Shown here in pieces: positions 35,699 through 39,090 of a stretch of DNA of 64,000 nt. The notes under the pieces were generated by a model that saw only the letters and a list, made by a program, of their open reading frames with translations, searched no databases and had not been told where the DNA came from. The first letter of the stretch is position 1, and each line of letters begins with the position of its first letter. Made by a program: the position numbers and the translations under genes. The stretch lies in contig JBBPEB010000015.1 in the NCBI GenBank assembly GCA_039096225.1, positions 1,488,001 through 1,552,000 on the forward strand, in the 5' to 3' direction. Origin of the DNA: Blastocystis sp. Blastoise. Lineage: Eukaryota; Protista; Bigyra: Opalinata.

Positions 35699-38600
35699 AT
35701 GGAATCTGATTGTCCAGTCTTATCGTTATTATCACAATATGAGGATGCTGAATCTTCAAATAATAATGGTATATATTTATTTAGCTTTTCATTTTTGTCT
35801 TATAAAATATTTTTATGCGTATTTATAAATCCACTAAAAATAAATACGAAAAGTATGTATATATATATTATTAATTATTATCAAGTATACAATCATTTAA
35901 ACTATTATACTATATTATATTATATATATATATATATATAGATTCAGGATCAAAGCTATTGACTCAAGGTATTTATATGCTATATTCTATTATATTCTAT
36001 TATATTCTATTATATTGTATTATATTATATATATATATATATAGATTCAGGATCAAAGCTATTGACTCAAGGTATATATATGCTATATTCTATTATATTC
36101 TATTATAATCTATTATATTCTATTATAATCTATTATATTATATATATATATATATATAGATTCAGGATCAAAGCTATTGACTCAAGGTATTTATATGCTA
36201 TATATATATATATATTATATTATATTATATTATATATAGATTCAGGATCAAAACTATTGACTCAAGGTATATATATATATATATATATATATAATATTAT
36301 ATTATATTATATTATATTATATATAGATTCAGGATCAAAACTATTGACTCAAGGTATATATATATATATATATATATATATATATATATATATAATATTA
36401 TATTGTATTATATTATATTATATTATATATATAGATTCAGGATCAAAGCTATTGACTCAAGGTATATATATATATTATATTATATTGTATTATATTATAT
36501 TATATTATATATATAGATTCAGGATCAAAGCTATTGACTCAAGGTATATATATATAATATTATATAATATTATATTATATTATATTATATTATATATCTA
36601 GATTCAGGATTAAAACAATCGAGTGAAGGTATATATTAGATTATATTATATTATACTTATTATATATATAGATTCAGGATCAAAACTATTGACTCAAGGA
36701 TATATATATATATATATATATATATATATATATATATATATATATATATATATATATATATATATATATATATATATATATATATATATATATATTATAC
36801 TTATTATATATATAGATTCACGATCAAAACTATTGACTCAAGGTATATATATATATATAATATTATATTATATTATATTATATTATATTATATATATAGA
36901 TTCAGGATCAAAGCTATTAACTCAAGGTATATATATATATATAATATTATATTATATTATATTATATATATAGATTCAGGATTAAAACAATCGAGTGAAG
37001 GTATACATATATATATATATATATATATATATATATATATATATATATATATATATATATATAGATTCAAGATTAAAACCGTCCATTCAAGGTATATATT
37101 AGATTATATTATATTATACTTATTATATATATAGATTCAGGATCAAAACTATTGACTCAAGGTATATATATATATATATATATATATATATATATATATA
37201 TATAATATAATATTATACTTATTATATATATAGATTCACGATCAAAACTATTGACTCAAGGTATATATATATATATATATATATATATATATATATATAT
37301 ATATATATATATATATATATATATATATATATATATATATATATATATATATATATATATATATATAATATAATATTATACTTATTATATATATAGATTC
37401 AGGATCAAAGCTATTGACTCAAGGTATATATATATAATATTATATATATGTATTATATTATATTATATTATATATATAGATTCACGATCAAAGTCGTTGA
37501 CTCAAGGTATATATTATATTATATTATATTATATTATATTATACTTATTATATATATAGATTCAGGATTAAAACCATTGATTCAATGTATATATAATATT
37601 ATATTATGTTATATCATATTATAATATATATATAGATTCAGGATCAAAACCATTGACCGAAGGTATATATATATAACATTATATATCAACACTATATATA
37701 TAGATAATGAATTGAATCATACTTCAAATAATGGTATATGCATATATATTATATACTAATATATATATATATACTATACTATATATATAGCTGAATGTAA
37801 GCGATCAAAGCATTCCCTAATGAAAAGTATATATATATATATATATATATATATATATATATATATATATATATATATATATATATATATATATATATAT
37901 ATATATATATATATATATATTCATAGAAAGCCGCCGAACACTGTCAAAAAGTAGTTCAAAAAAGCGTTCAAGCAACAATTCATTCGAGGGTATCTTTTTA
38001 GTTTTATAATATATCTATTATTATTCTTAGACTCACAAGATGATGAAATACAATTCAAATACAAAAAAAATAAAAAACATAATGTGTCCTCTTTGTTTAA
38101 TATAAATTGTTCGAGTATTCTTTTTAATTTTTTTTAATTTTTCTTATGTTGTGATATTTTTCATCTATTCTTATTAAATATTTTCTTCTTAAATATTTTT
38201 CTATTTTTATTCTTTTCCATTTTCATTTCTCACATTATTAAATATTTTACAATTTCTATTTTATTTTGTTTTCTTATAATTTACTTGAATATATATATTT
38301 GTTATTGAGTTTAACCTATATAAAATGCCCGACTCTGCTTTATAAAAGTTCATGATGTCTCTTTATATAGTTTAAAGTTTATGAACTCATATAATATTTT
38401 AAATATATCATTTAAACTATAAGATACAAAATAGAATGTTGTTGTTTTATATTTTATATGTGTTTGCTTTGTTTTTGTGTTGTAAATTATTTGCTATTGC
38501 GAATTAATATTACACACTTTTGTTTTTGATATGTTTGATCTCGAAAATATTTTCATTAACTTACAAAATATATTATCATATATATAGATTGTAAAAGAGT

Positions 38601-39090
38601 TGAAAATACTTTTGAGTTTCATACATCTTGCTTTTGTCTTAACAACAAGGGAGACAAAGGTATATTATTGTCTAATAAAATAATAAAAATATTTTTATTG
38701 TTTCGTCTTTAGATAATAATAACTACAAAAACACCCTTGAGAAAACATTTTTTAATAGTAAGTTATTTACTATTAATTGTGAAGGTATGTTTTGATGTGA
38801 AAACAACCTAAAATATATATAGGAACTACAGACTCAGAAATAACAAATAAATTTATATTTAAAGACAACACAACTCTTTTTGCAAATAAAAACAGATTTT
38901 CAACATGTCCAACAAATCAAGGTAAATATTTTTATAATTTAAATTCTATTATGACTTGATAGTTACTTTAAATAATAATAATCAGGAAAATGAAAGTGAC
39001 GAGGATCTCTCAAGTCCTCCTTATTATGATGAAAGGGTTTCACCTCCTACTTCTCCTGTTTATCCTGTTTCTTCTCCTGAATATTATTAA
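35699..39090 (+). CDS. Predicted micro-exon gene inside the Helitron: 28 exons, all introns phase 1, ~388 aa with (DSGSKLLTQ)x19; function unknown; start uncertain
   Basis: Exons 35699-35768, 19 x 27 nt (35942-37662), 37704-37733, 37791-37826, 37927-37989, 38031-38114, 38588-38659, 38713-38784, 38823-38921, 38963-39090 (TAA). Every internal exon length is a multiple of 3 and AG/GT-flanked, except micro-exon 9, which has a GA donor. The spliced frame is open. Confidence 0.65.
35942..37662 (+). repeat. Array of 19 copies of the 27-nt unit ATTCAGGATCAAAGCTATTGACTCAAG separated by ~40-140 nt AT-microsatellite introns
   Basis: Each unit is preceded by TAG and followed by GT (one GA). Variants encode [45 protein letters not shown] and YSGSKPLTE. 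Confidence 0.9.

Follow-up and report, generated by a model that had tools for sequence, protein, structure and literature searches.

We describe a stretch of 64,000 nucleotides from Blastocystis sp. Blastoise, an isolate from the tortoise gut (assembly GCA_039096225.1, contig JBBPEB010000015.1, positions 1,488,001 to 1,552,000 of the forward strand), hereafter the window, which has a G+C content of about 21% and contains an autonomous Helitron. On the same strand as the transposase gene (RepHel) of this element and upstream of it, 2.6 kb from the Helitron 5′ end, lies an array of 27-nt micro-exons followed by a series of unique small exons; array and exons together are referred to as the module. 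A preliminary description, made from the sequence alone, had proposed a Helitron-borne micro-exon gene at this site. The canonical termini of the element, its RepHel domains and a GenBank gene annotated at exactly 35699-39090 all agree with that proposal. The element is laid out as follows.

33076-45601, + strand: autonomous Helitron, 12,526 bp, edges matched against copies L001, L003 and L006
39382-45321, + strand: annotated RepHel gene, protein P0127 (1955 aa), which the window matches at 100%
39382-40396, + strand: RepHel exon 1, as annotated
40469-45321, + strand: RepHel exon 2, encoding the Rep and PIF1 helicase domains; the preceding intron is 72 nt, phase 1

Among the genomic copies compared below this locus is L002 (GCA_039096225.1, JBBPEB010000015.1), which is identical to window 29382-55321. 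At the 5′ end, homology to paralogous copies begins exactly at a TC (33076), and the flanks are unrelated between copies. At the 3′ end, homology stops at CTAG (45598-45601), which follows a 17-nt GC-rich hairpin (45574-45590). As read from occupied sites, A precedes the element in three copies and T in two others, the window included, and the base after the CTAG of the window is T. The open reading frame (ORF) at 40549-45321 matches Helitron_like_N (PF14214, E = 1.9e-57) and PIF1 (PF05970, E = 8.9e-61) in Pfam. The element therefore has both the coding capacity of an autonomous Helitron, a Rep/HUH-type domain with a PIF1-type helicase, and its ends, a 5′ TC and a 3′ CTAG with a subterminal hairpin. 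Canonical autonomous Helitrons such as Helraiser encode a RepHel with an N-terminal zinc-finger-like region and make no target-site duplication. The present element resembles them in its termini, its Rep and PIF1-like helicase and its presence in several copies; what sets it apart is the module, upstream of RepHel or N-terminal to it, with its variable tandem array and about 27 small, symmetric exons in all. The segment 33000-45600 occurs once within the window, and the large duplications of the window exclude the array.

Exons of the upstream module and their annotation

The exons of the module, all on the + strand, are listed below.

35699-35768, + strand: exon E1, with the start codon, 23 codons plus 1 nt; its donor sets phase 1; same first exon in P0001 and P0123
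35942-37662, + strand: array of 19 tandem 27-nt micro-exons, consensus DSGSKLLTQ, found by fuzzy search; homologous units are exons in the models of other copies
36672-36698, + strand: unit 9 of the array, defective, acceptor kept and donor GT changed to GA
37704-37733, + strand: unique exon of 30 nt, phase 1-1, used in P0001, P0123, P0130 and P0132
37791-37826, + strand: unique exon of 36 nt, phase 1-1; 4/4 differences from L001 synonymous in the model frame
37927-37989, + strand: unique exon of 63 nt, basic Ser/Lys/Arg patch, used in P0001-type models
38031-38114, + strand: candidate exon of 84 nt, AG and GT intact, homologous to an 81-nt exon of the diverged subfamily
38588-38659, + strand: unique exon of 72 nt, Cys-containing, identical in 7/7 copies and present in every deposited model
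38713-38784, + strand: second unique exon of 72 nt, in P0132 and P0129, skipped in P0001, P0123 and P0130
38823-38921, + strand: unique exon of 99 nt with the most conserved motif of the module, as judged by comparison of copies and the diverged subfamily
38963-39090, + strand: terminal exon of 128 nt, acidic and Pro/Tyr-rich, acceptor 'tgatag', stop 39088-39090
39303-39304, + strand: conserved AG acceptor 'ctatag', phase 1, with the frame open to the RepHel ATG; used by the deposited model of the diverged subfamily

Joined in order, these exons give a model of 28 exons (70, 19 x 27, 30, 36, 63, 84, 72, 72, 99 and 128 nt) over 35699-39090. It comprises 1167 nt and encodes 388 aa with 0 internal stops. 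The series of 30, 36, 63, 84, 72, 72 and 99-nt exons and a terminal exon that had been read beforehand from the sequence is confirmed, and the accompanying claim that the exons are frame-symmetric holds, 27/27 introns being in phase 1. The lengths of all 26 internal exons are divisible by 3; for the seven unique ones (7/7) this has a probability of about 5e-4 if lengths were free. Altogether 25/28 exons are ≤81 nt, and the introns measure 36-173 nt, plus one of 473 nt. As predicted, the module is thus made entirely of exons with lengths that are multiples of 3, split by host-type phase-1 introns. The product of about 388 aa put forward in the preliminary description is matched in length by this frame. 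However, in this copy unit 9 must be skipped because its donor is GA, which puts the full form beyond the reach of canonical splicing.

Pfam matched no family on the module. On inspection, the E1 peptide is an acidic start of 23 residues in which a long hydrophobic core is absent. The basic patches, one in the 63-nt exon and one just before RepHel, could be likened to nuclear-localisation signals, although this is a guess.

The GenBank gene at the module has a 330-aa product and is separate from the RepHel gene. This length equals that of the 388-aa model minus unit 9, the 63-nt exon and the 84-nt exon. Moreover, the 330 aa of the window and the 312 aa annotated in L006, with its 16 intact units, each correspond to E1, all intact units and the 30, 36, 72, 72, 99 and 128-nt exons, a composition displayed directly by P0132 from copy L005. 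This is the most parsimonious composition behind the 330 aa, as judged from exon lengths, although other combinations could sum to 330; the 63-nt exon is thus probably left out of the annotated model of this copy. The 84-nt candidate is used by no deposited model of this subfamily, and its donor is lost in L001, L003 and L004.

Eight deposited proteins map perfectly onto their loci with GT-AG introns. The 27-nt units serve as exons in four models (P0001, P0123, P0130 and P0132), and six carry the module as the N-terminus of RepHel (P0001, P0123, P0130, P0129, P0002 and P0133). In P0001, P0123, P0130 and P0129 the join runs from a donor within the terminal exon to an acceptor made by an A-to-G change. 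Within the terminal exon of the window, GT occurs at 39058 and 39067 (phase 0), and the equivalent internal donor is the one used by the fused models. In the window, the frame stays open from the acceptor ending at 39304 (phase 1) as far as the RepHel ATG, and an in-frame fusion to RepHel would thus in principle be available to any donor upstream. The stop of the short form and its Tyr-Tyr ending are conserved even in the diverged subfamily.

The 27-nt units and their variation among copies

All 19 units of the window lie on the + strand, and the fuzzy search of the whole window found none outside the array. An AG precedes each of them ('atatag' in 18, 'atctag' in one), and a GT follows 18 of the 19. 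Thus the units between TAG and GT that were first described stand in number and in their acceptors, whilst the GT fails at unit 9. The spacers are microsatellites of the (TA)n/(TATTA)n type, 43-136 nt long, and resemble host introns as had been stated: the inferred introns of neighbouring non-RepHel genes measure 33-76 nt and have the same gta...tag ends. The units are copies of one another; the AG, GT and open frame that they have in common were inherited and amount to a single observation rather than 19 independent ones.

The window was compared with seven further copies, L001 and L003-L008, which carry the following numbers of units.

L002 (the window): 19 units, unit 9 without donor
L001: 21 units
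L003: 25 units
L004: 24 units, array interrupted by a 2.8-kb insertion
L006: 17 units
L005: 6 units, truncated copy
L007: 0 units, truncated copy
L008: 0 units, diverged subfamily

The full-length copies have 17, 19, 21 and 25 units, and change by whole exon-plus-intron units. A five-unit block has been duplicated mid-array, whereas no array differs from another in its final three units. The preliminary description had suggested comparing unit number among the genomic copies and expected growth by duplication of exon together with intron. The number does differ (17-25), and the whole-unit differences and the duplicated block fit such growth.

Among 17 distinct intact unit sequences, joined in a minimum-spanning network, there are 7 synonymous and 19 non-synonymous changes. 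Because this ratio is the same as in the wrong frames, residue identity within the units is unconstrained. It could be argued on this basis that the units are a non-coding minisatellite within a phase-1 intron or 5′ region and that the real exons are the unique ones alone; on this view gene prediction produced the micro-exons as artefacts, which persist through an AG, a GT and an open frame inherited by each unit from one ancestral exon. The lack of a coding signature in unit variation is what such a minisatellite would give. Moreover, the units are young and near-identical, the frame survives skipping of the whole array, and stop codons occur in 3/112 units across copies. Nevertheless, we consider this explanation unlikely. 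According to the genome paper, models were chosen for introns supported by RNA-seq (PMC10690189), and the annotated lengths of two copies equal those expected if all intact units are included. P0130 and P0132, which start in an inserted element, splice into the acceptor of the next unit. Across copies both AG and GT are kept in 106/112 units, and 3/6 defective units have lost both sites, a coupling of losses above chance (p = 1.7e-4). No spacer falls below about the minimum for a host intron, the shortest in the compared copies being 36 nt and the shortest inferred host intron 33 nt. Finally, other Helitron families have arrays of 30-nt and 72-nt exons that are older and diverged, yet still open and symmetric. 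We regard the coupled site loss, the spacer minimum and the insertion-derived models as indirect support that the spliceosome may see the units.

Two further observations concern the arrays. Three single units (L001:10860-10886, L003:10596-10622 and L003:11020-11046) carry 6-8 clustered substitutions, mostly G/C to A/T, and their counterparts are intact in other copies; this could be local decay after splicing loss or a mutation cluster. In addition, a 3.17-kb element that also occurs in tandem next to the Helitron of the window sits in reverse inside the micro-exon arrays at L004:7374-10180 and in L005 upstream of 7955. It supplies the first exon or exons of the chimeric models P0130, P0132 and P0006, whose common N-terminus ends in GVVGTN. 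One model of this chimeric type comes from a different Helitron family.

Coding signal, origin and related Helitrons

Divergence between the window and L001 is mosaic. The block 37791-38587 is diverged by 11-38%, and the adjoining exons and introns by 0-2%, which suggests recombination or gene conversion between Helitron sub-lineages. Within this comparison the 36-nt, 63-nt and second 72-nt exons have a ratio of non-synonymous to synonymous differences per site (pN/pS) of 0.20 in the model frame; the two alternative frames give 1.75 and 2.17 (with stops). For the model frame, a Fisher test of synonymous against non-synonymous differences is significant at p = 7e-8. The first 13 codons of the 63-nt exon differ by 8 synonymous and 3 non-synonymous changes, and the length of this exon is kept although half of it has been replaced. 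Its second half (38%) and the 84-nt exon (37%) are diverged beyond the neighbouring introns. Gaps in exons between copies are few and come in multiples of 3. Among close copies, exons and introns are diverged by 5.6% and 6.9%, respectively, a comparison that is uninformative given the mosaic divergence. Because of the low pN/pS, the synonymous changes in the 36-nt exon and the multiple-of-3 gaps, we read the unique exons as translated in the proposed frame and, on this comparison, under purifying selection.

The module is also present, diverged, in the subfamily represented by L008, where it lies on the same strand as RepHel and in frame with it. Here, 12/12 internal exons are divisible by 3 and all are in phase 1; several are 30-nt exons of a small tandem array, with six candidates and a period of about 96-113 nt. 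Two distant families (L009:3001-13324 and L010:3001-11380), whose RepHel is 47% and 39% identical, have models in which 22/22 and 14/14 introns are in phase 1 and the N-terminal part is a long run of exons divisible by 3; L010 also has diverged tandem exons of 72 nt. Four uniquely solved non-RepHel genes served as a baseline and contain six introns in phase 0, three in phase 1 and two in a doubtful phase 2. Since this small baseline mixes phases, phase 1 is not universal in the genome. The all-phase-1 architecture appears, from these gene models, to be general in its Helitrons.

A word-based search with the P0001 module found relatives in Helitron copies of this genome only. A profile search of 1.84 billion representatives likewise found them only in Blastocystis sp. 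Blastoise Helitron copies. The one other match in these searches, to a bacterial repeat protein (E = 1e-4), is spurious, and no relative of the module was found in the Joint Genome Institute (JGI) metagenomes. Helitrons are known from maize and other hosts to capture host exons, and capture of a host gene had been raised as a possibility in the preliminary description; the fragment would then be carried passively, as in plants. The absence of any transposition-related domain from the module would fit such capture, and non-transposase coding exons inside a Helitron are what captured genes look like. However, no parental gene outside the element was found in the searches made, and the relatives are solely Helitron copies of this genome. 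Moreover, the module follows the strand and frame of the transposase, is conserved across subfamilies, is under purifying selection between sub-lineages and has analogues in the two distant families. Capture of a host gene is therefore not supported by these comparisons, and we regard it as highly improbable.

A further alternative is that the module generates diversity, as in Schistosoma, through regulated skipping of micro-exons, and that the resulting isoforms tune, for example, transposase activity or evade a host factor. All exons are symmetric, and the architecture recurs in three Helitron families. The 63-nt exon and the second 72-nt exon alternate between the deposited models of different copies, and the second half of the former, together with the 84-nt exon, evolves fast. 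Yet the differences between models may stem from differences in copy sequence or from annotation choices, and the unconstrained residues of the units fit a spacer better than a specific interface. We consider regulated diversity of this kind unlikely.

Several features of the surroundings may be recorded here. An RNA-gene explanation of the micro-exon region was discarded, as Rfam gives one tRNA only in the window. A tRNA-Phe gene (13974-14046) overlaps the start of an 822-aa ORF (14001-16469) that has no Pfam match and contains internal repeats at ~15421-15959. An annotated single-exon gene of 461 aa (31737-33122) runs 47 nt into the 5′ end of the Helitron, and its final 15 codons and stop are supplied by the transposon. 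A segmental duplication of ~15 kb (16397-31300 and 48989-64000, 99.3-99.9% identity) lies on both sides of the unique segment that bears the Helitron. Tandem 3.17-kb units, 99% identical, occupy 16397-22437 and 45602-55052, with diverged copies at 28648-31581 and 61348-64000; the second tandem array begins immediately past the CTAG of the autonomous Helitron. Each unit contains a ~500-bp satellite of 7-mers and has, in addition, a GC-rich hairpin of its own with CTAG after it (near 45780-45829), which resembles a Helitron 3′ end.

A probable lineage-specific transposase module and known exon arrays

Taken together, these comparisons make it probable that the region belongs to the transposase as a lineage-specific module, either N-terminal or accessory, which grows by frame-neutral duplication of exon plus intron and is not a captured host gene. 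One short 1-1 exon with its TA-microsatellite intron would have been duplicated in tandem, the microsatellite introns serving as sites of unequal recombination or slippage. A unit of 27 nt with phase 1-1 can be gained, lost or skipped without ever breaking the frame, and the array would be free to expand and contract. A unit may also die by losing both splice sites, with no harm done to RepHel or to the conserved exons downstream. The units would encode a Ser/Lys/Thr/Gln-rich and probably disordered spacer, which precedes a conserved C-terminal part. According to the copy and to the splice sites chosen, the product would be either an N-terminal extension of RepHel or a short accessory protein that terminates with the stop at 39090.

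Some observations weigh against a transposase module of this kind. As noted above, unit variation has no coding signature, and in so young an array simple descent could be enough to explain why the units still have splice sites and an open frame. As all exons are symmetric, E1 could join the unique exons directly, and the frame does not require the 27-nt units. The annotation of the window separates the module from RepHel, and the window is without the A-to-G change of the L001-type fusion. Pfam gives no domain, and AlphaFold no confident fold for the conserved part (predicted local distance difference test, pLDDT, of 38, a value that is uninformative with an alignment of only 4 sequences). 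The deposited models may be partly ab initio, and junction reads from near-identical units would map to several places. The genome paper used Braker3, StringTie and Mikado, tuned to keep strictly RNA-seq-supported introns; for the tortoise isolates it gives a G+C content of 21-23% and a low-complexity fraction of 12%, and it mentions neither Helitrons nor micro-exons (PMC10690189).

A more specific form of this proposal holds that the N-terminus of phase-1 symmetric exons, with arrays that vary by copy, is alternatively spliced to give both the accessory protein and RepHel isoforms of tunable length. We offer this tentatively and think it rather unlikely as a whole.

Among known systems, the closest in exon structure are the micro-exon genes (MEGs) of Schistosoma, which place the bulk of their coding sequence in very short exons that are multiples of 3 and can be skipped in frame; their products are disordered and fast-evolving, and exon duplication adds to their growth (PMC10526429, PMC8293314). 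The module is similar in that most of its coding sequence is made up of symmetric micro-exons, which in MEGs are multiples of 3 and 6-81 nt long. In contrast to MEGs, whose introns measure 100-5000 nt, its introns are short, with the single long one already described. It lies inside a transposon and is linked to the transposase of that element, and the host is a stramenopile protist. MEG families are restricted to flatworms, and their products have a signal peptide and are secreted. No sequence relationship to MEGs exists, the profile search having found only Blastoise relatives and Pfam none, and on inspection E1 has no apparent signal peptide. Moreover, MEGs produce variants by skipping, whereas here the corresponding observation is a differing exon content of the deposited models. 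As cited in MEG papers, DeMarco 2010 is reportedly also to be credited for MEG features, and a 1988 paper is said by its title, as given in a reference list, to concern tandemly repeated 81-base exons in S. mansoni.

Animals also have genes of tandem symmetric exons, such as the phase-1 cassette exons of tropoelastin, the 54-bp exons of fibrillar collagen and the PEVK exons of titin. Under Patthy's 1-1 exon-shuffling rule, a uniform intron phase lets exons be added, lost or skipped in frame. The module is like these genes in its apparent growth by duplication of exon plus intron, its uniform phase and its repetitive, low-complexity product. Unlike these host structural genes with their much larger introns, it has 27-nt units and microsatellite introns, belongs to a mobile-element gene and varies in unit number.

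The preliminary description knew of no such array in a rolling-circle transposon, and our literature search likewise found no report linking Helitrons with micro-exon arrays. On that search, what is new here is a tandem frame-symmetric exon array in a transposon's own gene; the gene itself had already been annotated. Tandem frame-symmetric exon arrays are otherwise known from few host genes, namely schistosome MEGs, elastin and collagen. For the annotation of this genome, a consequence is that the boundary between the upstream gene and RepHel is placed differently among copies. The near-identical copies form a natural series for the study of exon duplication, exon death and in-frame skipping. 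The occurrence of only phase-1 introns in three Helitron families of this genome suggests a rule by which coding sequence is added to a mobile-element gene. Were the N-terminus of RepHel indeed of tunable length, it would constitute a splice-controlled regulatory layer for a rolling-circle transposon, and the module may offer a handle on the regulation of this transposase.

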